Source: Paramoeba atlantica
Lineage: Eukaryota > Protista > Discosea
NCBI GenBank assembly: GCA_977017575.1
Contig: CDRNVI010000163.1
Location: forward strand, 134,518 to 198,517
Direction: 5' to 3'
Length of the DNA stretch: 64,000 nucleotides
Shown one piece after another: positions 1 through 15,059 of this stretch (positions are counted from its first letter, which is position 1; every line of letters starts with the position of its first letter). The notes beneath the pieces were generated by a model. It was not told the DNA's origin. It made no database searches and saw nothing but the letters and a program-made list of their open reading frames with translations. The translations under genes and the position numbers were made by a program.

Positions 1-817
1 CTGATACACGGATGTGAAGCTTTGTAGAAGGCACAATTTGTTGTTCTTTTGGGATTTGTGACAATTGGATGGTCACATTCTGAACGGACCATTCACCACG
101 AGAAACACTTGCGTGTGTTGGGGGAGTACCAAGAATAAAATCAATTCTGAAGTTTAATTGATCTTGAAAGTATTTGGCACTGGCTTGGACATCATGGACC
201 ATCAAGACAGGTTCGACATGAAAGAATTCAACCTCCTTTGTTGTATCATCATCATCATCATTGTCAATGATTTGTTGTTGTTGTTGTTGTTGTTGAAAGA
301 ATTCTGATTGACGCAACCCCCAAATCCCCATCACATGAGGCTCTTTCTCATGGTCAAATTGTTGAGGAAGACGTCCTTTAAAAGAAAATCCCAACTTTTG
401 TGCGACTCGCATAGATGGTTGGTTCCTCTCATCAATCCAAAGTTCAATCACTCGAACGTCAAGCTCTTTAAAAACATATCCCAAGACAGCTTTTGTCGCT
501 TCGACAACAAACCCTTTACCCCAATAATCAGGATGAAGAAGATATCCCATCCCTGGTACACGAAATTGACTGAAGAAATGGACTTGTCCAATCACAGTTT
601 CTTGGCCTTTCAGACGAATTCCCCAAAGTTTGGTTTTGTCAACACCGTAATCATGAAATTGCTTTTTTGTTTCAGCAACAGTTTCATGTTTTGGAGTGGA
701 CATAAAACGCATAACAAGATCGTTACTGTAGATGGAATGTAAATCTTCGATATCTCTTTCTTCCATTGGTTTTAAAACGAGACGTTCAGTTTCAAGAATT
801 TGCCCATTTTTTGCCAT
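1..817 (-). CDS. RimJ/RimL-type GNAT N-acetyltransferase fused to a C-terminal VOC (glyoxalase/bleomycin-resistance) domain; 3' end lies outside the window
   Basis: My own translation from ATG 817 is open to position 1 with no intron. It reads MAKNGQILETERLVLKPMERRD...MGYLLHPDYWGKGFVVEATKAVL...NQPSMRVAQKLGF (GNAT motifs), then a Q7/D5 linker, then EPVLMVHDVQASAKYFQDQLNFRIDF (VOC start). It is absent from the ORF track because no stop codon falls in the window. Confidence 0.85.
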   Translation of the reverse strand, partial: MAKNGQILETERLVLKPMEERDIEDLHSIYSNDLVMRFMSTPKHETVAETKKQFHDYGVDKTKLWGIRLKGQETVIGQVHFFSQFRVPGMGYLLHPDYWGKGFVVEATKAVLGYVFKELDVRVIELWIDERNQPSMRVAQKLGFSFKGRLPQQFDHEKEPHVMGIWGLRQSEFFQQQQQQQQIIDNDDDDDTTKEVEFFHVEPVLMVHDVQASAKYFQDQLNFRIDFILGTPPTHASVSRGEWSVQNVTIQLSQIPKEQQIVPSTKLHIRVS

Positions 818-952
818 ATCTCTCAGCAGCGAGACCCCAAAAAGAAAGAAAGAAAAGAACCGTCGGCAACTGTCGAAAAAGTCGAAAACCGCAACGAAAG
901 AAAAATCTGGGGATCTAATTTTAGCATTTTTTTTTTATTCCTTTGTTTCAAA

Positions 953-3870
953 TCATTCTTCTCCTTCATATCGTTTTGCTGGTTTGAGAACAACATGTTT
1001 TTCAGAGTCAAGAACCAAATTTTCTGGTCTCTCTAGTGAACCCAAGTTCTTTCTTGTTCGCAACTCTTCTAACGTTTCTTGAAACTGATCTCTTGAATTT
1101 CCCCATTCTCGATCAGCCACATCTTCCCACAAGACATCAACAATTTGATAATCTATCACCCCATACAATTGACGGAGTTCTGAGTAAATCCCCAACAATC
1201 GAATACATCTCCCATGCCCAACCAAAACAGTCCCTCCTCTAGGTGGGTCATTTTGCTTGCGAATCTCACAAGTTGCTCCTCTCTTTTTAAATGCACTCAC
1301 TACAGCCTCAACTGCAAAGGAGGAGCAAATAATTTCCATTTGATAAACAGGTTCAGCCAAACTAGGACTACTTCGCAAGAACAACCCATAAAAAACCTTT
1401 CGAGCAGTCGGGATAATCTGTCCTCCACCTCGGTGAATTGCATCCGAATGCAAAACCACCTTTGTAATGCGAAAGACGAGACCTCTCATTGGTTCATGAC
1501 CAAGAGGCCCCTCTAACATGGCCCACCGAAATGCTGCAAGGATTGAGTCTCGGACCTCTCGAATTGGTTGGGACTCTTCGATATCACAAATCAATAAATT
1601 ACCGTTTGTATGAGCCCAAATTGCGTTTTGGTTTGGTGCATACACCCCCCCCAGCTGCTCCAACTTCTTTTTCCATTCATTCAAACCTATCCTTTTTTCT
1701 TCTTCTTCTCTCTCAGCTCTTTCCAGCATCCTAATCACATTTTCGGGTAATCGGTCTACTTCCATTTCGATCAAGTTATGTCTGTTGGAGGATTTCGCAT
1801 AGCACGGGGATGAACACCCATTGATAATCTCTCGATATTCAAGAACCAAAGGAGAGATTTCAATATCAAAAGTGCTGTTCTCTTGCATAAAGGTTAGAGC
1901 CTTTTGAAGACTCTCTTCAGATCTTGCAGAGATGCTATTTTCCATTGTTTGTTCCCACTTGACCATTGGGAAACATCGGGCACCGTTTCGAAATAAGTCC
2001 ATGAATTTTGCCAAATCGCTTGGGGAAGGCACATCCAGAAATCTAGAAACAACTCTTGGAAGCTTTGGGGGTTGAGGCGGGGAGAAAAAAGAATTTGAAC
2101 AATTTGGAGAATCACTAATTATTCCTGTGAAAGGAGAAAGAATGAAAAAGAGAGAAATTAATTTTTTTTTTAAAGAAAAATAATAAAAAAATCAAACCCT
2201 GGACCGATCCTTTGAAAAGAAAAATTTGACCAGCAAAAACCATTCCAATCTCCTCAGGAGAGCTTTTCTCACACACATGAAGTGAAAAAGAACTGTTCTT
2301 CATCTTTTCATTATTAATAAAAAGAGAAGAGGGGTTCGGCAGTGTTGAAGAAAGCTCACCACAAAAAATCCGAGATAATTGAAAGATTGGGGATCTTTTT
2401 GTACACAAAGAGACAAAAGAGCGAGCTAATAATGGTCCCTTTGTTTCACAAGCTCGAATTGCCTGTTTTTTTTTTTTGTTATTATTTTTTTACTTTTGAA
2501 ATTCAAAGAGGGTTGTTTGAAAATGGTTTTGTATTTTTGTGTTTCTATTTCTCTTGATGTGGTGGGATGATCAAATTTTAATTTTCAAGGGGAGGATTCT
2601 GATTGACAATAAAATTTGTACAATAACAAAAGAAAAAGAATAATAAAAAGAAGTAAACCTGAGTCTTTTCATCATCTGGGGGACCATTATACAAAATCTC
2701 ACACCGATATCTTTGCGCAACGGAGGGAGGAGGAATGTAAAGAGTAATGGACGTCAAGATCGCATTCCCAATAGGCATAAACTCACTCAACATCACCTCT
2801 TTCTTCTCAGGGAATGTGAGAGAGAAAGCTTTTATCCCTTGTTCAATGGCTGGTTTATCTTTTGCTTTGATTGCATTGGAAAGAGATTGTAATGGCTCCA
2901 AAATAAATTCTACAAAACCTCTTTTTCCTTGAGTCTCCTTGGACCGGGGTTCCCATTCACTTGTCTCTTCATTGTATGAGAAATTTCCCCACAAAAGCTT
3001 TTTCAAGTTCTTTTCTTTGAGTTTAAATTTGTTTTCATAAACGTGGACAAATCTATCGAGAGAGAAACCCCAATTCTGTGTAAGAGAACCAAAGAGAACA
3101 TTTCCCTTTAAGGGAGAGAAGTGAAGATGTTCCCCCCAATTTGCAAGAATCCCTTCTTCTCTTGCTTGCTCAATTACTTGGTTCAATTCTTGGATGATTG
3201 AGAATATCATTTTGTATCCATTTTCAAGAGAAGAAGGAGAAAGAGAGAAAAGTTGGTCAATGTTGTTAATGAAGAGGATGGGGATCACTCTTTGGTAAAG
3301 AGATTGAAACAAAGAAGATTTGAGTGTCTGGAGAAAAGAAGCGGAAGGCTGGGAAGAAGAAGAGGGAGAAGAGGAGGAGGGAGAAGACAAAGGAGAAGAA
3401 GAAGAAGAAGAAGAAGAAGAAGAAAAAGAAAAGGTTGGTGATGCGATTAAAAAAGCACCATCAACAAGTGGTAAGAGAGAAGGAAGATCATCTTGTTCCA
3501 TTGGATGAACTGCTGTGATTAAAATTGGGTCTGTGCTTTCCTTCTCTTCTCTTTCTTCTTCTCCTTCTTCTTCTCTTTCTTCTTCTTTTTCTTTTTCTAC
3601 TTCTTTTTTCTCTCCCCCCAAAAAAGAAAGAGAAGAAATCCCCTTGCCACCAATCTCCAAAGGGCCTTCAAAAACAAAAGAAGAAGGGGAATGAAAAACA
3701 TGATCAGTCCCAAGATCACCATCATCCCATCTTCTCTCCAACACGATCGGATATCGGTTCCTTTTCCATCTCCAAAATTGAAATGGGAAGAGAGAAAAAT
3801 CTTCTTCTTCTTTTTGTTCTTTGAGAATGATTATATTTCTCAGTTGCTCAGGTTTGTTGAAATCCTTCAT
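953..3870 (-). CDS. Elongation factor 2 (eEF2) paralog with degenerate G domain, about 882 aa; join(3870..2659,2462..2198,2124..953)
   Basis: Colinear with eEF2 throughout: AQRYRCEILYNGPPDDEKTQ|AIRACETKGPLL, FAFRW-like AFRWAMLEGPLGHEPMRG, LHSDAIHRGGGQIIPTARK and LAEPVY. Two GT-AG introns (2658..2463 and 2197..2125) restore the frame. The G1, G3 and G4 motifs are replaced. Confidence 0.9.
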
Positions 3871-4039
3871 TTTCTGTTGAGAGAGAAAAAGGAGAAAACA
3901 ATCGTTCAACACCTCTCACCAAGAGAAAAAAGGGAAAAAAAGAAGAGAAAAACGGTGTCAGCTTTTTTTTTTTCTTTTTCTTTATTTTACAACTAATCTA
4001 CAATGTCAATGGAGAATGTTTTTCATCTTTTCGTTCGGT

Positions 4040-4753
4040 CTATTTGGCCAGAACGATACTCAAAAGGGAGAGAGGGAGGGTGAGAATTTGTCCCCTCTTT
4101 CTTCCTTGACTGACTTTTACTTGGAACCACCACTGCCATTCGCCATGGGTTTCGGAATAGACACGGGTCTGTGAGGAAACAAATCCATACTCAAAGTCAC
4201 TTTGTTGTGGACAGAAGGACAAATCTCCCCCACCATTCGCTCTTTCCACCTCTTTCGAAAGATTTTGTTCGGTTGAAAGGCGTTCGATGTTTCTCACTGG
4301 GATTACGAAGTCGCCCTCCCCGATCTGGTCCGCCCAACAAACACGTCGCAGAAGTCGGATTTCTTTTGTGGGAAAAGTAGACGACTTCTGGTTTTCAAAG
4401 AGTAAACTGATTTTGTTGGTATTTGACCAAAGGACAATTCCTAAGTTCCCTTTTGGGCACTTCACAACACTTCCTGGGCAATAAGAGGTGTGTAAATTTT
4501 CGGAATCTCGTTGTTCGTCAAGCTCCAAAAGGTCCACAGAAATATTAAACTTTTGAAGAGGCCCATAGATCCCAGTCGATAAGAAGACAGTCACAATTTC
4601 TTTTCCTTTGGGAGAGAAACGGGTCCAAGATGCAGTTAAACAGTCATTCGGTGTTACCCCACTCGCAATCCTTTTGGTCACACGAACATACGAACCGAAG
4701 GGGAATCTTGGAGTAGAGGGAGTGGTCATTTCATCAACTTGTTGCTGAAACAT
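4040..4753 (-). CDS. Hypothetical protein, 237 aa, intronless, possibly repeated small beta-barrel (KOW/SH3-like) modules
   Basis: ATG-started ORF with normal coding composition. Recurrent patterns such as FPFGSYVRV, YCPGSVVKCPKGNLGIV and GEGDFVIPV suggest barrels. The fold call is inference. Confidence 0.6.
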   Translation of the reverse strand: MFQQQVDEMTTPSTPRFPFGSYVRVTKRIASGVTPNDCLTASWTRFSPKGKEIVTVFLSTGIYGPLQKFNISVDLLELDEQRDSENLHTSYCPGSVVKCPKGNLGIVLWSNTNKISLLFENQKSSTFPTKEIRLLRRVCWADQIGEGDFVIPVRNIERLSTEQNLSKEVERANGGGDLSFCPQQSDFEYGFVSSQTRVYSETHGEWQWWFQVKVSQGRKRGQILTLPLSLLSIVLAK

Positions 4754-5420
4754 TTTTTTTCAAACTGAAATATTCTTGGGAAATTTTGTAATTCTCTTTC
4801 TTTTGACTTCATTTTTGTAAAACAAGTTTGACATTTGACATTGAGGATGACAAATTTCGAGAAGTTTGACAAATATTCTATAAAAGGAATTCAGGGAAAA
4901 AAGAAAATCAACCCAAAACAGGAAAATCAGCATCATTTCTTTGTTTTTCGAATTTTGTCCTGAGAACGAACGTAGGGAAAGGCAGAGAAAAGACAAACTT
5001 GTCAACTTTCTCCCAATTTAATCTTTTTTCCTTCCAAGAATCTCCCAATCTTTTTAATATCTATCGAAGATAAGAAAGATCCCAGAAAGACTCCATTTTC
5101 TCAAAAAGATAGAGAAGAGAGAGAGGGGGGTAAATAGAAGTTACAGGATGATATTATTGTTTTGTGATATTTTGATGAAAACAGAAAACATTCAAAGATT
5201 TGAAAGTAAACTTTTTGCCAATACAAGAAAAGGAAATCATCACCAAAACTTTGTTTGCGGAAAACCTTTGGTCCTGTTTCGTTTTCCGTGTTTTTTTGTG
5301 TTTTAAACTCGAACCAATTTCAGAGAAAAAAATTCTTCTCACGCAGAGAAACACCAGCAAAGTTTTTTCGAATTTTCTTTTTTTTTTGTTGAGGAATTGA
5401 ACTTTTCGTTTTGTTGAGTC

Positions 5421-6596
5421 ATGGGGTGTGGTTCGAGTCACAATGTCGATGAATCTGCATACAACAAGAACAAGCAAATCAACCGATACTTGAAAGAGAG
5501 CAGCCAACCCAACATTTCAGGAAACATCCGCCTTATGATGCTGGGCCACGAACAAAGTGGAAAAACCACTTTTTGTCAACAGTTGAGAGTGTTATACAGT
5601 GAGGAACCATTCTCCAAGGATGAAAAAGAAGTCTATCGTGATCTCATCCACGCCAAAATCGTCTCTGCCCTCACGGGACTCTGCCGTAAAGTGTTGAACA
5701 GCAAGTCCTTTGAATTGCAGGGAGAGAGTAAATTGAGGATAATGAATTTCAAAGAGAAATATTTCAATTTGAGCCCGTCTTTCAGTCTCACCATACATGC
5801 TCGCAAGATGGGGTATAGTCGGACAAGTTACGATGATCTTCGAAATCCTCGCCCAATGTTTTTGATGAATGAGCAGATGATAAAAGATATTCTCTCACTT
5901 TGGAAGGATCCAGTCATTCAAGAATCTTGGCAACACACCACGCTCGATAGCGACGAGCTGATCCCCCCTATTTTGGGATACTTCATGGACCATTTTCATC
6001 GAATCACAATGGTGGAAGAGGACGAGGAGAAAACCATCTCTTACATCCCAACAACAGAAGATATTTTACACTGTGGGTTGAACACCCAAATTATTGAACA
6101 GTTCATTTTCCAAATTGACGACCACACCTTTGACATATACGAGTTTGGAGGAATCAAACCAAGAGCACCAGAGCGAGATATCTTCGAACATATGGCTAAC
6201 GCAGCTCTTATTCTCTATTTTCTCTCTATGGACACGTATGGCGAAGATAATTCTGAGGGAAACGTGTTTGCCTCCAGACTCGAGCACCTCGACGAATTTA
6301 AAAAGTGCAAACGATTCCACAACACCAAAATCATCCTCTTTCTCTCCAAGTGTGATGTTTTTCGAAAAATCATCGAAGATAAACCCCTTTCCTCTGTATT
6401 TCCCAAGTTTAAGGGGAAGGATACATACGAGGGAGCGATCGAGTTTGTGAAAGAGAAGGTGAGAGAGACCGTGGGAGAGAGAGTGGTGTTTGTGATCGAG
6501 ACGAATTGCATGGATGTTGGGGATGTGAAGTATGGTTTTGAGAGTGTGCTGGGCACTCTACGTCATTTCACCACCATCAAACCTGCTGTTTATTAG
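5421..6596 (+). CDS. Heterotrimeric G-protein alpha subunit, atypical, 391 aa, intronless
   Basis: N-terminal MGCGSS (myristoylation/palmitoylation), P-loop LGHEQSGKTTF, helical domain with LWKDPVIQE and YFMDHFHRI, G4-like LFLSKCDVF, and C-terminal TNCMDVGDVKYGFESV. Confidence 0.92.
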   Translation: MGCGSSHNVDESAYNKNKQINRYLKESSQPNISGNIRLMMLGHEQSGKTTFCQQLRVLYSEEPFSKDEKEVYRDLIHAKIVSALTGLCRKVLNSKSFELQGESKLRIMNFKEKYFNLSPSFSLTIHARKMGYSRTSYDDLRNPRPMFLMNEQMIKDILSLWKDPVIQESWQHTTLDSDELIPPILGYFMDHFHRITMVEEDEEKTISYIPTTEDILHCGLNTQIIEQFIFQIDDHTFDIYEFGGIKPRAPERDIFEHMANAALILYFLSMDTYGEDNSEGNVFASRLEHLDEFKKCKRFHNTKIILFLSKCDVFRKIIEDKPLSSVFPKFKGKDTYEGAIEFVKEKVRETVGERVVFVIETNCMDVGDVKYGFESVLGTLRHFTTIKPAVY

Positions 6597-7050
6597 TACT
6601 AGATTCTCTCAGAGTGTGAGAAGAAAAACAGAAACTCCCAATAATCTTTTTTTCCTCCCAAGAGTCTCCCAATTTTTTTTTCTGCCAATCTTTTTTCTTT
6701 CAGCCAATCTTTTTTTCTCTTCAGTTTTTCTGCGATTGGAGCCTCGTCCCAAACAATTAAGTCTGTTTGTTGGATTATTTTTGCTAGATCTGATCGAGGT
6801 ATGAAAATACAGACATCCGAGTTTGAGGGGTGAATTGGAATCTTTTTAGTTCACCGATCTATACTGCTCCTCCATTAATTTACTCGAGATGAGTTAGAAC
6901 GTGAGCTCTTCCAAAAAAGAACCATCCCAAAACCTCCAACCACAATTACAACAACAAATGAACCACCAAAAAAAAAAAGAAGGAGGAAGAAGAAGAATGA
7001 AAAAAAAAAAAAAAAAAGAGGAAAAAGAGGAAGATACAATATTTTTTTTT

Positions 7051-9339
7051 TTATTTTTTCAATTTTTTGCTTGATTGTTTTCCACAATTATCACAATGCT
7101 TTCGAAAACATTTCTCATAAGAAAACCCAACCGAACAATGCGGACACTGCATCTTTTTTCTCTTCTTTGCCTCTTCTGGTGGATTTTCTTCACTCTTTTC
7201 TTCTTTCTCCTTTTCCTTTCCTCTTCTCTTCTCTTGTTTATTTTTTAAAACCACTTTGTTCAAAGCAGCATTTTCTGAGGTGAAAAGAACAGGTGACACA
7301 TGAAGAGGATGGAACGGGGTCCCATATGCAAGAAGTTTGCTGCTTGATAATCGCAACTCCGAAAATTGAGCATTGTCTTCCTCATCGCCTTCTTCTCCAT
7401 GAGCCTTGAGATGAGGCAACAAACCGGATTCACGATTCGAAAATGTCCTTGGACAGAAAGGACAAAAGAATTCTGGTGCCATTTTTTTGTTCTTCTGTAA
7501 CAACATAAGAAATGGAATCACTTCTGTGCTCTTATGAACAACACTAGCTGATTGACTCTTCTCCCACACCATTGGCAAAACACCATCTTTAACAGCTTGC
7601 AGAGCCAAAATCCCTGCTTCACCATGAGAGCAATTTTTGCTTCGTCCAATTTCGCACTAATAAACCAATCAAAATTAATGATTTCATTTAATTCATTTTT
7701 CAAAAAAAAAAATGAAAAATCTCACACCGTACATTCACCTTGTTCAATTTGACCTTTTCTGGGAATCACCATCGCAGAATGACAAGGGGGTTGGGTGAAC
7801 AGTTGGGCAAACTGAAAAAACAATCTGAAAGTAACCAACCTCTGTTTTGGAAGACCAAAATTGAACCTTTGAGATAAACCCAGAAGAGAAAAGGCGCATT
7901 GCTCGTGTTCGTGGGTACAAAGGAAGCTTGGTACTTTCGCTCTCTGGAACTCGATCAAAAAGGGTGTTTTTTTGTTCGAAATCATTTCTTTGTTCCTCAT
8001 GAAATTTCACTGATGACGGAGTTGATAAAAAGTTATAAAAATTCTCTTGAAGCTGTTTCTATTCAAAGATTTTTTTTAATTTTTTTTTTTTGAGAGAAAA
8101 CTAAAAATAAAAAACAACCTCCCAATCTATTGGAATAGCATCTAACAACCCTTTAAAGAGATCTTTTACTTTCTCGAAAGAGTGTGGAGATGATAAGAGT
8201 GGTGGTGGTAGTAGTGAAGGGGGTGAAAGAGGAGAATATCGTTTAAAGAGATCGCAAGCATGCTTTTTAATAACATCACTGAGATCAACTTTCTCTTGGA
8301 GTTCAAAAGGTGTAAAAGTCTGACGATTGGCCAAGGCATATGCAATATCAAGAGCAACTTCGCCATGGAGGATGTCATGTCTAGTCCAGTCACTCTTCCG
8401 ACCAACATTCTTCTGTGCAGCATGATGTCTGCATTCAACTTGTGCTCGAGCTTTTTGTTGTAAAAAATCATGTTTAACTTGAGATGCCAAATACTGTTTT
8501 CTACCACAAAGATTGTGTGGTGTTTCAAAAGAGAGCAAGTCTTCACACACCTCCTGATCTTTCTTTGTTTTAAAGAAAACTTCACGTATATCAAATCGGC
8601 TGCCACCACGATCGAAAATAACAACAATTCCAGCAACATTCTCACACAAAGTACAAGACTCAGTGAAGTAGGGACACTTCTTCAGCGTCTCAATTTCTTC
8701 ACTTGCTCCACCAAGAAGTGGGCTTCGATATAAAAAATACCCATCAGGTGCTGTGAAAGCTCCGAGTTTCACCGTATGAAATTTCTTGAGTTTGGAACTA
8801 TAGAGAATATTCGTGAGATGAAGGTTTGACCAAGGGTGGTTGGACACAATTATTTCCTTTGGATCAGAGAGGAGACAGAGAACTACTTGGTCCTTTCCGT
8901 ATTTTTCTTCAAGAAAGATTTTCAGATCATGTGGAGTGTGTTTCTCAAAGATTTCCTGAGGAGAAAGAAGACGAAAATAATACGGCACCCAAAGAGCAGA
9001 AACAAGAAATCCACCATTCTGAACGAGAGTCCGAACCTGGGTTGCAGAACCAACAGGGTAGTCAACAGAAATTTTTTCATAACCCACACCCCCAACATAA
9101 TAGAGAAAGACTAAAAAAAACTCGATCACAGGGGGCACACCACCAGAATTGTTGCGCTGGTGATGGGAGTTAGAAGAAGTCCTAAAAATTGGTAAGAGGA
9201 TGTCTTGGTTCAAGGGTTCATGGCGTCTCATAAAATAATTCCATTGTTCTTCTGTGACAAGAGTCTGAAAATCAAATGCCAGATCTTCTGGAGTTGAAAA
9301 ACCACACATTCCTCGAAAAACTCGGCGGTGAACCTCCAT
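7051..9339 (-). mobile_element. DDE_Tnp_4 (Harbinger/ISL2EU-like) transposase-derived gene spliced to SWIM and C2H2 zinc fingers; join(9339..8119,8058..7728,7656..7051) with an apparent +1 frameshift near 7786-7790
   Basis: HTH-like FLVFLYYVGGVGYEKISVDYPVG. Putative catalytic D (SDPKE, 8863-8865), D (FDRGG, 8611-8613) and E (QVECR, 8434-8436), plus HTVKLGAFTAPDG. GT-AG introns 8118..8059 and 7727..7657 give in-frame GECT|CEIGRSKNCSH (SWIM), followed by CPFCPRTF...LLPHLKAH and CPHCSVGF...FRKH. No terminal inverted repeats were recognised. Confidence 0.75.
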
Positions 9340-9403
9340 CTGAGATTTTGAGGAAAACGAAGCGATCCCGAAAATTTGGAGAGACCAAAACGGCGCAATT
9401 TTT

Positions 9404-10126
9404 TTGGCGAATTCATCCAAAATAAAACCTGAGACCTTCTTACAACAGATTGATGAAGCCGCAAGAGAAGCTTTCAATAAATGGAGAAAAGATGGCCTCC
9501 CAGCTGAAATAGAAAAATCAAACATTAATAACCTTTGGTACGCCCAAAAACTACTTAAAAAACTCAGAAACAGCAAAAAAATCTTCAAAAACAAAGTCAG
9601 CAAAAGAATTCATGAAAACCTGCAAGACAAATATAGAGACCTCCCACAATACAGACGAAGGATAAAACTCCTCCCAGAGTTCATAGAACAAACCAAAGAA
9701 ATAATTGAAGATACAATAAGCACAATCGGGTGCCCGATCAATCTTCCAAAGGAAATAGCAACTGGAATCACCAATCCATATTTAAAAAAACCAAACACAC
9801 AGAAACTCAGACTACTAAACCCAGAAACTAAAATGGAGGAAAAAGACCCAAACAAAGTCGCTCAACAACTGGGAAATTTCTGGGAAGGAATCTTTGGAAA
9901 GGAAAGACCAAATTCCCAAAAAAAAATGGAAGAACTCCTCGAAGACTACCCCGAAATTTCTCAAGAAGATGATTTTACAATTGACCCCAAACTTGTAACA
10001 AAAATAATCTCCAAAACAAATAGAACTGGCTCAGGACCAAATGGAATTCCTTTTTCATACTACAAAGCTATGCATGACGAATTCCCAAGTTTCTGGCCTG
10101 ATTTCATTGAGGCGGCAATCAGTTGA
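9404..10126 (+). mobile_element. Non-LTR retrotransposon (LINE) ORF2 fragment: endonuclease-RT linker to start of RT, truncated at both ends
   Basis: Contains KVAQQLGNFWEGIFG and KTNRTGSGPNGIPFSYYKAM, the SPGPDG-type motif before the RT core. The segment is A-rich and stops at 10126 without RT core motifs. Confidence 0.75.
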
Positions 10127-10559
10127 AAACCAAAAAGATTTTCTATGAAACAGCCAAAATTTTTGAAGTCTTTTTGGCCATTATTTTAGCCATTTAGTTT
10201 TGGCTAAATTGGGAAGGTGAATTTCGAGCGAAAAGAGAGAAGAAAAAAGAGACGCACAAACAGCGGGTGTGGGAGAGAGAGGCGAGATGAAAGTTGCTGA
10301 TGGTCTTTCTTGTGAGATGAGGGACCTGAGTGACAGACAATCGAAAGAAGAGAGAAAGAGAGGGAGAGGAGGAGGAGATAATTGATGAATTTGAGAGTCC
10401 TTTTAATTTTTTACCAATGAGAGAAATTTCTTTTTGAAAGATTCGTTTCAACCCTGTCACTTCAGGCAATTCTTCTTTTCTCTCTCTTTTTTTTTTCTCT
10501 CTCTTCTTTTGACTCTGATTTTTTCCATTTCTTTTTTTTTTGAGTCTTGAGAGACTTTT

Positions 10560-10930
10560 CTCAAACTTTCTTTTGAGCTCTCTGCCAGCTTTTGCCGATT
10601 GATGGGGGTGATATTTCCCCATCTATCTTTCACATCTGGCAAATATTTTAATTTTGGAGATGAAAAACAAATGCGATTGAGAATGTAAATTGTTGATTTT
10701 TCAGTTTCATTCTTGAATTGAACTTTTGTTGTTGTTTGCTCCTCACATTTTTTTTCCAATGAAAACCCAAACCACACCTTGGGAGAGAAAAAAAACAAAA
10801 AAAAAACAAAAAAAAAAAAAATGCCAGCTTTTGCTGAGGAATGGAAAATTTTTTCTCCTCCATCCATCTTTCACATCTGGCAAAGATAATTAATTGGTGA
10901 AGATTTAAAACCAAACTCTCAAGTGAATAT
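10560..10930. repeat. Diverged local duplication of about 100 bp
   Basis: TGCCAGCTTTTGC...CATCTTTCACATCTGGCAAA occurs at about 10583-10642 and about 10822-10883. Confidence 0.7.
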
Positions 10931-11097
10931 TCCATTCGCGAATGATTTTTGTTTGGAAAGTTGTCCTTCCAAAATTCTGATTTTTTTAACAACCAAAAAA
11001 GATTTGGACAAGAGAAAATTGAACAAGAATATGATTGTGAAGGAGACGAAAAGAGAAAAAAGAAAAAGGAGAAAAGAAAAAGTTATTTCAGAAAGAA

Positions 11098-11899
11098 ATA
11101 ATCAAATATCAAACAGGATTGGCCGTGTCAATCTTAGTCATAATGGTCATATATTGTGGTGTCGATCCCATCTCCGCTCTTGACCAAATGACAGAGTTCT
11201 TTTTCTTTCAATTTCCCTCCTCTCTCTCTCTTTCTTTTAAGATTTATCTCCCACTCTCTCTCATTTTTTCTTTTTCTCAGTAATATTTATTATACAGAGC
11301 AAAACAATGAAAAATACCAAATTCAAGACTGGGAAGGGATATCTCAACCAAGCCTGGGCTTATCTTAAAAAAGAGGGAGATGATGGGAGGCTCGACTTCA
11401 AAAGAACCATTTTTGTCGTTTCGGAATGTGAGGGGGGGGGTGCCATTGGAGTCCCATCTGCCTTCTGGTTGGTTTTCCTTTTTTTATCTTTCTGAAGAAG
11501 ACGGGAAGGTGCAGTGGAAGCCGTATCATCATTTTCATCAAAATTGACAAGCTTTTCCAGGATTCATTTTTCTCGTGATCCACTGAATAGGGGAGGTGGG
11601 CACTACTTTTTCGTTGATTCTTGTCGCCGAGCAAATGTTGGCCTTGTTGTGGAAATGGTTCGTTCTGGCATTTGGAGTCGGACCATGGGAGGGGAAATCT
11701 TTTGAAGATGGATTTGATCACTCTCGTGGAGGATACCACCCAGGCTGCAAATTGTTGGGATGCAGGAGAAATTTCTTCCAATTCATCCGACCAACATATG
11801 GCTGTGAAAGGAAAAGACGCTGCAATCACTGCACACATGAGATATTCCCAAGGAGCATTTGAGCAATGTTATGTCTTCCCTCTCATCGTTGAAGTATAA
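11098..11899 (+). pseudogene. Unidentified coding-like, frame-disrupted region
   Basis: GC content is higher than in neighbouring introns and the fragments look protein-like (TGLAVSILVIMVIYCGVDPISALDQ; KGYLNQAWAYLKKE; LKMDLITLVEDTTQAANCWD). I could not build a continuous spliced ORF on either strand. Confidence 0.25.
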
Positions 11900-12258
11900 A
11901 CAGGCTGTTATCGAAGGGGAGGCTGCCACTGAGATTGATGATGATGAGAAGAAAAGAAATGAGAAAGCAGAAAAAAGAGAACACAAAACTCACCAAAAAT
12001 GAAACGACACTCACCAAAATAAAGGACTTTTTGTTGGTGTCCCTTTTTTTCGCTGAAACTTTATTTTTGGGAGCCCTCTTTTTTCTGTTTTTTGGAGAAT
12101 GTTTTGGTTGAAAGATAATCAGTGAATGTTTTTTGCCATTTTTTTTTCGATTCTTTTCTTTTCAACAAAAAAACAAAAACTTTTGTTTTTTGAAAAAGAA
12201 AAAACTTTCTTTGGTTGTTTTTGAAAAAAGAAAAAAGAAAACTTCACATATCGCCCAA

Positions 12259-15059
12259 AATGTCTGTCTTGTCGAATTTTTGGAGTCTTGTTGACGACGA
12301 AGAGGAGGAACGAAACCAGAAAGAGACAACTTCTTCTTCTTCGAATGTTGAAAAGAAGAAAACTTCTTCTTCTTTTTCTGCTGATGAATATTCTTTGGCC
12401 AGGCCTTTGAGTCTTTTGTTTGCGTCTTTTCTTGAATGAGAAATGTGGAAAGAAGAGAGAGAGAGAAACACCTTCGTTTTCGAGAGAGAGAAGAGAGAAG
12501 AGATCAAACGATTTCTTTCTTTCTTCTTTTCTTCTTCTTTTTCTCTTGTGTTGGACATGAGTGAAAAAAAGGTCAAAAGCGACTTCACATGATGAAAATA
12601 TCATTTTCTTCTTCTCATTATTTTCGAGAAGAAGAATAAAAAATTTTGGAACAAAATTACTCCGAAAAATTGGATCTCTTTTTTTTTTCTTTTTTCTTTG
12701 TTTCTTTTCTTTGTTTTCTTTCTTCTTTTTTTTCTTTGTTTCTTTGTTTCTTTTTCTTTCTTTTCATCACTTTTTATCAAAAAAAAAAAAGTGATGGAGT
12801 GGAAAGATGAAGATAGTGAAGTTTGGAATGTGATGGCAAAACCTTTGTTGCAATTGATGAAGAATCTTTCTTCTCATTTTTCTCAGATCAAGAATTGGAG
12901 TTTGAGTCGTTTTACTTCTCTCAAACGAAATGAGGTTTTTCTTTTTTTCTTTTTCTTTCTTTTTTTCTTTTTTCTTTTTCTTTTTCTTTTTCTTTTGAAA
13001 TGAAAAATTTAAGAGAAAAATCATTTTCTCTCTTTTTTTTCTCTGATTTCTTTTCTTCTTCTTCAAGATGGAATTGTGTTCATTAATTGGTGATTCATTG
13101 AGAGAATATTGGGACAATATTTTGCTTTTTACAGTATTTTCTTTTCTTTTTCTTTTTCTTCTTTTTTCTCTTTCCTTTCTTTTCTTTCTTTTCTTTTCTT
13201 CTCTTTCTTTTCTGACTTGAATAAAAATAAATAAAGTCAGAAAAGAAATCAAAAGTCCCACAACTTGATAACCCAACACAAACTCATTGGGCAATCTCTT
13301 TTCGAATGATTCTTGAGGTAATTTGTGATCTATTTTTTGAAGAAAAGAGAAGAGAGAGAATGGGAAAAGAGAAGAGAAAAGAAGAAGAGAGAGAGAAAGC
13401 AATAACTTTGAAAAAGGGGACGGGAAAAGAAATTGAAGAAGAAAAGAGTCATCAAGCTCGAAAAGCTCTCCTTTTCTTTCTTGAGGTTTTCTTCTTTTTT
13501 TCTATTCTTTTTTTCTTTTTCTTTCTTTTCTTCCTTGATTCATCAAACCACTCCACATTATCAATTCATTTTATGAATGAATAAAAAGAGAACAACAGAA
13601 AAAGAGGGTTGTGAAAGTTTTGTAGGAGAATCATGATTCCGATATTTAATTAATTTGCTCATTATTTATTTCATAATTAATTAATTAATTGATTTAATAA
13701 TAATAATAATAATAAATAAATAAAAGAGAACAACGGAAAAAGAGAGTTGTGAAAGTTTTGTAGGAGAATCACTGCTAAAATATTTGAGTTCTCATTTTAT
13801 TGATCCCTGTAATGCTTTTATTGGTATGACTCCTTCTCATCGTCTCATTTTTGGTTTGTTTTTCTTTCTCATTTTCTTCTTTTTTTTCTTTTTCTTTTTC
13901 TTTTTGCAAAAAAATGTTTGTTGATTTATATAATTTTATTGTTGTTCTCATTTCTGTTATTTTTCTTTTTCTTCTTTCTTTTCCCAAAATCTTAAACAAT
14001 CAATAGAAACGGCAAAACCACAAAAATCACTTGCAATAAAAAGTGTACAAGAAACTCAATTCGAAAAAATTCAATCTCTCCTTACGGTTTCTTCTCCTTC
14101 TCCACTTTTTTTACTTTCTTTCTCTCTTTTCATTTTCTTTCTCTTTTTTTCTCTCTCTCTTTCTCTCTCTCTTCTTCTCTTTCTTATTCTTGTTGACAGT
14201 CTAAGAAAAGAAAAGAAATCAAACTTCGATCAGCTCTTGTCTCACAAAAACGGTTCTTCTCCAATTTTTTTTTTTATTTCTGAATTTTCCTGAATTTTTT
14301 TTAATAGGGGACGATCGAGAACCGACAATAAGTTTCTCTTCTTTTCTCTTCTCTTCTCTTCTCTTCTCTTCTTGTTGATCCCTATTTTCACAATTAATTT
14401 TGAATATTGAATACTCTTCTTTTCTAATTCCTTCTTTTCTTTCTTTTTTTCTCCAACATAGAATTTCTCAATTCCAACCACCATCAACATCAACATCAAC
14501 AACAACATCATCAACACCATTATCATCTCTTTTATCGACCTTGCCTTTATCGCCAAAAATGGCAACGACGGCATCAACAACACCACCATCAACAATCCCG
14601 TTTTTATTATCTTCATCTTCATCTACAACGACAACACCATCTTCATCTTCAACAACAACAACAACAACAACATTACCATCTCCATCAACTGCAAAAATCG
14701 CATCTCCACTCTCATCATCTATACCAAAAATAAGAGATTTCTCTTCTCCCTCTCTCACTCTCTCTTCTCCCTCCTCTCCTCTCTCAGCCCTCTCTCTCCT
14801 TCCCCTCTCTCCTTCCCCCTCTTCTCTCTCTCCCCCCTCTTCTTCTCCCCTCTCTCCCCTCCCATCTTCCAAAAGAAAAGCATTTTACCAAAAGAACAGT
14901 TTCCCTCTTCCTTCTTATTCTTATTCTTGTGAGAGAGAAGAACTCTTTCATCTTGAAGAGTTGTTGTGTTTGTGGGCTGAGATTGATGATGATGCTTTTT
15001 TGGCTTTTCAAGTTCGGAAATGGGTTCTTGAAAAGCGTTTAAGAGAGGTTTTTATTTAG

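Follow-up and report, generated by a model that had tools for sequence, protein, structure and literature searches.

The 64,000-nucleotide stretch of Paramoeba atlantica DNA that we analyzed (the window, whose positions serve as coordinates below) is a portion of contig C163 (CDRNVI010000163.1) of an assembly that comprises 45.7 Mb in 248 contigs (GCA_977017575.1, here labeled G000) and that mixes two eukaryotes, a host and its endosymbiont. At positions 953 to 3870 of the minus strand lies a gene whose product is related to the elongation factor eEF2. Its three exons join to form 2649 nt, or 882 codons, with zero internal stops, and the frame is open throughout a coding sequence of 39% GC. 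The original prediction, which described the product as an eEF2 paralog devoid of its GTPase motifs, had placed the ends of the gene exactly, although it read straight through two GT-AG introns that had been overlooked. The findings described below make it very probable that the gene encodes an eEF2-derived pseudo-GTPase of the host that is expressed, under selection, and restricted to its lineage.

Four read runs from one study contain this stretch of DNA. In run X2, a single 2152-nt contig lies on positions 964-2123, 2197-2460, and 2658-3351 and is continuous in its own coordinates, such that its joints coincide with the modeled splice sites of both introns, given a one- or two-base ambiguity at the joints. 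The matching contig of run X1 is unspliced and hence genomic. Because searches of the assembly revealed no intronless copy of the gene, the spliced form in X2 represents RNA and not a retrocopy. Thus, the gene is transcribed and both of its introns are correctly spliced. A separate X2 contig over exon 1 spans positions 3634-3913, and read contigs are interrupted at a poly-Ser insert that is described below. Word depth in X2 is 26 for the contig of the studied gene versus 536 for the contig of the eEF2 gene of the endosymbiont, a comparison that gives a rough indication of modest expression. At position 2896, inside exon 1, one contig from run X4 (depth 89) carries a T where the window carries a C, which is possibly a strain or allele difference.

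The G1 (AHVDHGKST), G3 (DxPGH), and G4 (NKxD) motifs by which members of the eEF2 family are recognized are lacking in the studied gene and in two relatives that reside on the contigs L017 and L018. In an alignment of the studied gene, L017, and L018, the G1 position reads QLRNIIILKEQKEEED, QLRNIIILGPQSPKDS, and QLRNVIFLGQSSSIEK, wherein the remnants equivalent to ILKEQKEEED of the studied gene are ILGPQSPKDS and FLGQSSSIEK in the relatives. The G3 position reads DPILITAVHP, DPILITALYP, and DPILITALFP, and the G4 position reads PILFINNID, PVLFIDNID, and PILFIDNIQ, respectively. The original prediction had reported the replacement of these three motifs, at coordinates that we confirm, as well as the presence of acidic and poly-Ser inserts in the G domain (Table 1). 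Judged from its sequence, a protein in which the P-loop, switch I, DxxGH, and NKxD are all missing is predicted to be incapable of binding or hydrolyzing GTP in the canonical way.

The original prediction had singled out an alternatively spliced exon that restores the P-loop as a finding that would overturn it. tblastn searches of positions 1-12000 with residues 1-120 of P0273 and the 80 N-terminal residues of the C186 protein, which are two host-type eEF2 proteins introduced below, did not reveal an alternative P-loop exon, and a six-frame scan of positions 1-6000 for GxxxxGK[ST] did not expose a hidden one. The only P-loop near the studied gene, within positions 1-12000, is that of an adjoining intronless G-alpha gene (5421-6596, plus strand; Pfam G-alpha). 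Directly upstream of the studied gene is an open frame of 237 amino acids (4040-4753, minus strand) that is also a gene call on the ENA contig L006.

The exons were searched and folded separately. Exon 3 matches Pfam EFG_IV (2e-15), and among solved chains it matches eEF2 at 1e-34 to 1e-35 and human Snu114 at 5e-26. An AlphaFold model of exon 1, generated from a 35-sequence alignment, has a mean predicted local distance difference test score (pLDDT) of 77 and a predicted template modeling score of 0.79. The model is confident in the G-domain strands and in the entire stretch from G4 to G'', and pLDDT values fall below 50 in both inserts, acidic and poly-Ser, and in residues 29-59, where switch I formerly lay. 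The best structural matches of this model are eEF2 G domains (template modeling scores 0.62-0.66, 18-21% identity), which indicates that the fold is retained while the nucleotide-binding residues are gone. Indeed, Pfam, PDB, the model, and the alignments all agree with the earlier description of a full-length protein that is colinear with eEF2. Like the cytoplasmic factor (yeast 1N0U; the amoeba-type P0273), the protein has five colinear domains, the G'' insert, EFG_IV, and both tip loops of domain IV including the conserved His residue. It differs from eEF2 in that its G1, switch I, G3, and G4 elements are destroyed, it carries inserts, and it has a rewritten domain V and a new tail, with an overall identity of ~25-30%.

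Table 1. Features of the studied gene by window position.
Feature	Positions	Strand	Remarks
Exon 1	2659-3870	-	404 codons, ATG at 3870-3868; degenerate G domain, G'' subdomain, start of domain II; open frame
G1 remnant ILKEQKEEED in place of AHVDHGKST	3799-3828	-	Lacks GK[ST]
Acidic Glu/Lys-rich insert ahead of G3 strand	3538-3612	-	pLDDT <50; same place in L017 and L018
G3 remnant TAVHP in place of DSPGH	3502-3516	-	Catalytic His position lost
Poly-Ser insert in G3-G4 strand interval	3352-3429	-	pLDDT <50; same place in L017, L018, and C168 paralog
G4 remnant NNID in place of NKxD	3256-3267	-	From sequence
Intron 1	2463-2658	-	196 nt, GT..AG, phase 0; skipped by X2 contig; acceptor conserved in L017
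Exon 2	2198-2462	-	265 nt, domain II; covered by spliced X2 contig; homologous exon in L017 and L018
Intron 2	2125-2197	-	73 nt, GT..AG, phase 1; skipped by X2 contig; acceptor conserved in L017
Exon 3	953-2124	-	End of domain II, domains III-V, C-terminal tail; stop codon 953-955; Pfam EFG_IV, PDB eEF2, alignment
First domain-IV tip loop KSSNRHN (canonical KSxNKHN)	1775-1795	-	Alignment; present in all family members
Diphthamide loop LHSDAIHRGGGQIIPTAR	1400-1453	-	His codon CAC at 1433-1435
Family-specific C-terminal tail ..LKPAKR..	956-1024	-	Replaces canonical ..YLDKL end

Two established eEF2 paralogs were considered and rejected as identities for the gene. Snu114 (EFTUD2) is distinguished by a GHxHHGKT P-loop and by an acidic domain at its N terminus (PF16004), and the studied protein, whose N terminus lies 9 residues ahead of where the canonical G1 strand would be, has neither the extension nor the P-loop. 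A search of the assembly with the PF16004 profile gave no match anywhere, and hence this result has no bearing on the studied gene. EFL1 (Ria1) is characterized by intact G motifs, large insertions, and the absence of a diphthamide loop, which is the opposite of the pattern seen here. Moreover, separate copies of both paralogs are present, in the form of a Snu114-like gene on C20 (VGDLHHGKT, with G motifs intact) and an EFL1-like gene at C44/C66 (AHVDHGKTT, DSPGH, and NKID, without the loop). The statement in the original prediction that EFL1 and Snu114 keep their G motifs is therefore true of both copies in this assembly, which are the only ones found there and are located on contigs of the endosymbiont type.

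Close relatives of the gene are few. An exhaustive HMMER search with exon 3 over 1.84 billion representatives, for which the general eEF2 background is ~126 bits, yields only three proteins above that background, namely P0001, P0002 (63% identity), and P0003 (45%). P0001 is a miscalled version of the studied sequence, and P0002 and P0003 come from L017 and L018, which are contigs of the ENA assembly ERZ24900291. This assembly also has a contig identical to part of the window. A word-based protein search with exon 1 scored nothing, which does not imply that relatives are absent since the low-complexity inserts swamped the word list. L017 and L018 each carry a whole, colinear gene with three exons, and the acceptor sites of both L017 introns align with those of the studied gene. 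The dead motifs and the acidic and poly-Ser inserts are themselves conserved across the three genes. Thus, the search for orthologs that the original prediction had recommended has produced two relatives, 62% and ~45-55% identical to the studied gene, that match it both in exon structure and in their dead motifs. In a phylogenetic tree, the three genes form a clade with 100% support on a stem of 3.4 substitutions per site, and the sister group of this family is not resolved.

Neither the L017 nor the L018 gene is present in the P. atlantica assembly, where the best match to them is the studied gene. They have the same base composition as the studied contig, and no synteny with the window was found beyond the gene itself. 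They are either paralogs from the same host that lie in an unassembled part of its genome or orthologs from co-sampled relatives. The synonymous divergence (dS) between the studied gene and L017 is 0.77, which is close to the value of 0.85 for another pair of eEF2 genes divided between the two assemblies (C186 and P0271, described below), as if one event, compatible with speciation or with a large duplication, had produced both pairs. The regions flanking the two genes (L017:1000-2250 and 7140-7375; L018:10280-11700 and 13035-13540) carry a repeat family with hundreds of matches of 68-88% identity on AT-rich contigs of the P. atlantica assembly (C137-C225), and this repeat also occurs in one AT-rich island of the GC-rich contig C60 (383.3-384.1 kb).

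Comparisons within the family reveal that the gene is under moderate purifying selection and is not decaying. The ratio of nonsynonymous to synonymous substitution rates (dN/dS), calculated by the Nei-Gojobori method with 95% bootstrap intervals, is 0.36 (0.24-0.52) for the studied gene versus L017 (213 codons), 0.35 (0.26-0.45) versus exon 1 of L018, and 0.36 (0.23-0.50) versus exon 3 of L018. A composition-matched neutral simulation gives a ratio of nonsynonymous to synonymous differences per site (pN/pS) of 0.98, with a range of 0.79-1.25. Since dS versus L018 is greater than 1 and near saturation, the true ratios for this comparison are probably lower. The original prediction had held that a dN/dS near 1 in all domains would betray a decaying pseudogene, and values of 0.35-0.36, with intervals that span 0.23-0.52, against 0.98 for the neutral control speak against such decay.

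Constraint is distributed unevenly along the protein. Relative to L017, dN/dS is 0.16 in a segment of 55 codons that surrounds the diphthamide loop, versus 0.51 for the remaining C-terminal part. When pN/pS relative to L018 is computed in segments of 65 codons, the tightest values are found for residues 196-325 of exon 1, which extend from G4 to G'' (0.33-0.38), and for residues 131-195 of exon 3, which belong to domain IV and immediately precede the diphthamide loop (0.37). Constraint is loosest over the first 65 residues, which correspond to the old G1 and switch I region (0.74), where domain III begins (0.90), and in the tail (0.80). The proposal that selection preserves the tip of domain IV while GTP binding is lost is consistent with the fact that dN/dS is lowest at the loop, but it does not account for the portion of the dead G domain from G4 through G'', where constraint is about equal to that on domain IV.

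In eEF2, two loops at the tip of domain IV enter the decoding center of the ribosome, and the His residue of the second loop carries diphthamide. The first loop is present as KS(S/P)N(R/K)HN in all three family members. The second conforms in the studied gene to HxDxxHRGGGQIIPTxRR, reading LHSDAIHRGGGQIIPTARK, and thereby includes the putative diphthamide-acceptor His as far as sequence alone can identify it. This loop is intact as HRGGGQIIPTAR in the studied gene, in L017, and in a second paralog on C168. Gene conversion can be dismissed as the source of this perfect loop because 7 of its 15 third codon positions differ from those of the endosymbiont eEF2 gene. At the C terminus, a [LI]KPAK motif is common to the studied gene, L017 (P0002), and L018, and in the alignment it is absent from C168, C186, and canonical eEF2.

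Because the assembly mixes host and endosymbiont, the presence of a canonical eEF2 must be checked for each partner. The genes that appear canonical at first sight are two near-identical intronless genes on C29 and C49 (e.g., C29:655842-656627), which encode a protein that is 100% identical to a protein of the Paramoeba atlantica transcriptome MMETSP0151. The named relatives of this protein are kinetoplastids (Bodo saltans, 76%; Leptomonas, Strigomonas, and Phytomonas, ~75%), and it is 84-85% identical to the transcriptome entries PhF_6 and PhM_4, which we take to be prokinetoplastids. We therefore rejected these genes as the source of the canonical eEF2 of the host, and they are instead those of the kinetoplastid endosymbiont of a Paramoeba-like host. 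Contigs numbered below ~70 also carry genes for Snu114 (C20; e.g., C20:447000-453500), EFL1 (C44/C66; e.g., C44:157000-162500), an EF-G-like protein (C44/C70), Dph1 (C39/C40), and Dph2 (C26/C59), and most of these genes occur in near-identical pairs. Those contigs of this group that were sampled (C20, C29, and C60) have 43-52% GC, and their translated genes are intronless. These characteristics fit the Perkinsela-like endosymbiont described for Paramoeba, wherein Perkinsela has 47.1% GC and lacks introns and the host has abundant introns (PMC5601477). C163 has 35-36% GC wherever sampled and the studied gene has spliceosomal introns, and the sampled contigs numbered ~137 and above are AT-rich (~35% GC) and intron-bearing. 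The AT-rich, intron-bearing contigs (C163, C168, and C186) thus most likely belong to the amoebozoan host of a partnership of the Paramoeba/Perkinsela type.

No host-type gene for Snu114, EFL1, Dph1/2, an EF-G-like protein, or a fully canonical eEF2 was found in the assembly, and therefore its host part looks incomplete. An intronless gene on C186 (36% GC; L007:4168-6711) encodes an eEF2 of 847 amino acids that has all G motifs and an altered loop, HSDSAHRGGGQISPAVRR. This protein scores 1050-1116 bits against solved eEF2 chains, slightly below the endosymbiont protein, and among named organisms it is closest to Balamuthia (64%) and Acanthamoeba (63%). A counterpart in ERZ24900291 (P0271; L056:3001-5544, ctg2935l) is likewise intronless, has all G motifs, and is 83% identical to the C186 copy, with a dN/dS of 0.12 for the pair. 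Both are ~72-77% identical to P0273, a fully canonical amoeba-type eEF2 in ERZ24900291 that is intronless, has the loop HADAIHRGGGQIIPTARR, and is flanked by AT-rich DNA. The C186-type copy may be a specialized working eEF2. Exact look-ups of the C29 and C186 proteins found neither in the protein collection. P0273 and the C186 gene indicate that a working host eEF2 exists beside the dead copy, albeit not the one that a quick look at the assembly picks. The separate canonical eEF2 that had been expected is therefore present, but in the host-type genes on C186 and in ERZ24900291 rather than in the C29/C49 genes of the endosymbiont.

The host contigs carry a second eEF2 paralog with a degenerate G domain on C168 (38% GC around the gene; L008, corresponding to G000:C168:77000-86999, minus strand, with the open frame also at L004:1222-3297). 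Its motifs read IVGDGSDS for G1, HIQPH for G3, and NKME for G4, a long poly-Ser/Pro insert is located at the same position as the insert of the studied gene, and its loop, DAIHRGGGQIIPATRR, is intact. The two paralogs are only 25-30% identical, and C168 forms a separate long branch in the tree.

Similar copies are also found in other organisms. Among the 150 best matches to exon 3 are many full-length eEF2-like proteins in which G1, G3, or G4 deviates from the consensus, and most of these retain a loop of the HRGxGQxxPxxR type. Examples are found in Pelomyxa schiedti (KAH3744087, with a G4 of NNVD), Dictyostelium discoideum (KAM9958618), Arcella intermedia (A0A6B2KY08), Paramecium tetraurelia (XP_001433631), Aspergillus pseudoustus (KAL2826027), and Cladochytrium replicatum (KAI8807393); matches from these species and from ENA contigs include P0022, P0112, P0140, P0143, P0083, P0019, P0040, P0072, and P0106. 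Most bear no annotation beyond 'elongation factor 2' or 'hypothetical'. The fact that the studied gene is no closer to these proteins by BLAST score than to canonical amoeba eEF2 suggests that the degenerate copies probably arose through independent losses. A quick tree that grouped all dead copies was discounted, as this grouping looks like long-branch attraction.

That translation GTPases can have paralogs that are pseudo-enzymes is known in general. However, full-text literature searches, with most subscription journals outside their reach, found no paper on eEF2 pseudo-GTPases. As far as we could find, such proteins are undescribed in the literature and yet present, unremarked, in public proteomes. 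In a survey of translational GTPases, eEF2, Ria1, and Snu114 are the only entries for the cytoplasm of eukaryotes, and EFL1/Ria1 is described as a paralog of eEF2 whose binding to the ribosomal factor site takes place outside of elongation (Atkinson 2015, PMC4342817). EFL1, a GTPase of 60S biogenesis, differs from the studied protein in that all of its G motifs are present and the diphthamide loop is missing, and it is encoded separately at C44/C66. Snu114 is likewise derived from eEF2 and can retain an HRGGGQ(I/V)IPTARR loop outside of translation, but unlike the studied protein it has GHxHHGKT, DTPGH, and NKxD motifs and an N-terminal acidic extension. A working analogy is offered by mycobacterial EF-G2, an extra and non-canonical translocase copy that is described as a stress-specific factor (bioRxiv 10.64898/2026.05.25.727771). 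EF-G2 is not a relative, since it is bacterial, has an independent origin, and differs in the details of its G domain, and it is not known to have lost nucleotide binding entirely.

As to function, we tentatively favor the possibility that the studied protein occupies the factor/A site of the ribosome independently of GTP. A duplicate of cytoplasmic eEF2, restricted to its lineage, that retained the five-domain architecture and lost the GTP-binding motifs would still dock in this site without a GTP cycle, and as a passive occupant it would act as a damper of translation or as a hibernation-type protector of idle ribosomes. Docking on the ribosome is favored because the two tip loops and the structural core formed by G'' and domain IV are the best-kept parts of the protein. 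To judge from the entry titles of solved structures, such a protein would resemble eEF2 parked on dormant ribosomes with SERBP1/Stm1. Several observations weigh against this proposal. The switch regions, through which the factor is normally anchored to the sarcin-ricin loop, are gone, and domain V has lost its canonical ..ESFGF.. block. The diphthamide loop of L018 is degraded to HRGPGQFVSLSQR, and therefore this loop is not essential to the family and cannot be called essentially invariant, as had been claimed. Selection is weak beside that on paralogs with intact G motifs (dN/dS of 0.35 versus 0.08-0.12), and L017 shifts frame several times, which may reflect either decay or indel and assembly errors, the latter of which occur in at least one source of the same sequence, as P0001 demonstrates for indels. 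Finally, all evidence for expression comes from the single run X2, whose library type is unrecorded.

The loop itself is also less telling than it appears. The Snu114-type protein P0028, which has GHLHHGKT ~150 residues into its sequence, carries the loop LHRGGGQVIPTARR, and Snu114 is a protein of the spliceosome and not of the ribosome. The loop is thus shared within the eEF2/Snu114 lineage and provides no proof of a role involving diphthamide, ribosomes, or toxins, contrary to its use as a pointer to a toxin target in the original prediction, and its conservation is equally compatible with a job away from the ribosome. For example, the eEF2 fold might serve as a scaffold in some other complex in the manner of Snu114, wherein the tip loops would be structural or would bind something new. 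We regard this as rather unlikely, albeit deserving of serious attention given the very long stem branch of the family, its new and conserved C-terminal tail, its conserved inserts, and its rewritten domain V and switch regions. Nonetheless, a non-ribosomal function does not readily explain why both loops that reach the decoding center are kept or why dN/dS is lowest in the loop region. Furthermore, neither a new domain nor a targeting signal was seen, and the match of the protein to eEF2 outscores its match to Snu114.

The intact His residue and full loop of the studied gene, L017, and the C168 paralog are likewise consistent with a decoy or sink, wherein a diphthamide-modified copy absorbs bacterial ADP-ribosylating toxins or titrates the Dph enzymes and thereby protects the working eEF2 of an amoeba that is presumably bacterivorous. 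This scenario seems improbable. Loop conservation is not specific to carriers of diphthamide, most of the loop is lost in L018, and the Dph1 and Dph2 genes found in the assembly sit on contigs of the endosymbiont type. In addition, an effective stoichiometric decoy should be abundant, whereas the transcript depth of the gene is modest in the same run that yields far more endosymbiont eEF2. It is more improbable still that the gene is a transcribed relic headed for loss whose residual constraint is only apparent. Its fast evolution, with a dN/dS three times that of the paralogs with intact G motifs, and the frame breaks in L017 would be expected of a relic. In contrast, a run of 882 codons without a stop at 39% GC, two precisely spliced introns, and a dN/dS significantly below the neutral control would not, and the L018 gene is intact over all three exons despite a dS greater than 1, with dead motifs and inserts that are conserved.

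If the protein is an occupant of the ribosomal factor/A site, as we tentatively propose, then a broader conjecture can be entertained, although we consider it a long shot. Nucleotide-free derivatives of eEF2 could represent an unrecognized and recurrent class of eukaryotic proteins that silence or protect ribosomes, and the copies of the Paramoeba host might even check the growth of the endosymbiont by acting on its ribosomes. The gene described here very probably represents a third kind of eEF2 paralog, expressed and selected, in which the GTPase engine has been dropped and the probe of the decoding center has been kept. If this protein and its counterparts in other organisms do not bind ribosomes, they would join Snu114 as a second case in which the translocase fold has been put to use elsewhere. 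If they do bind ribosomes without GTP, they would offer a new means of approaching the translational dormancy of protists, and the question is directly testable in Dictyostelium.

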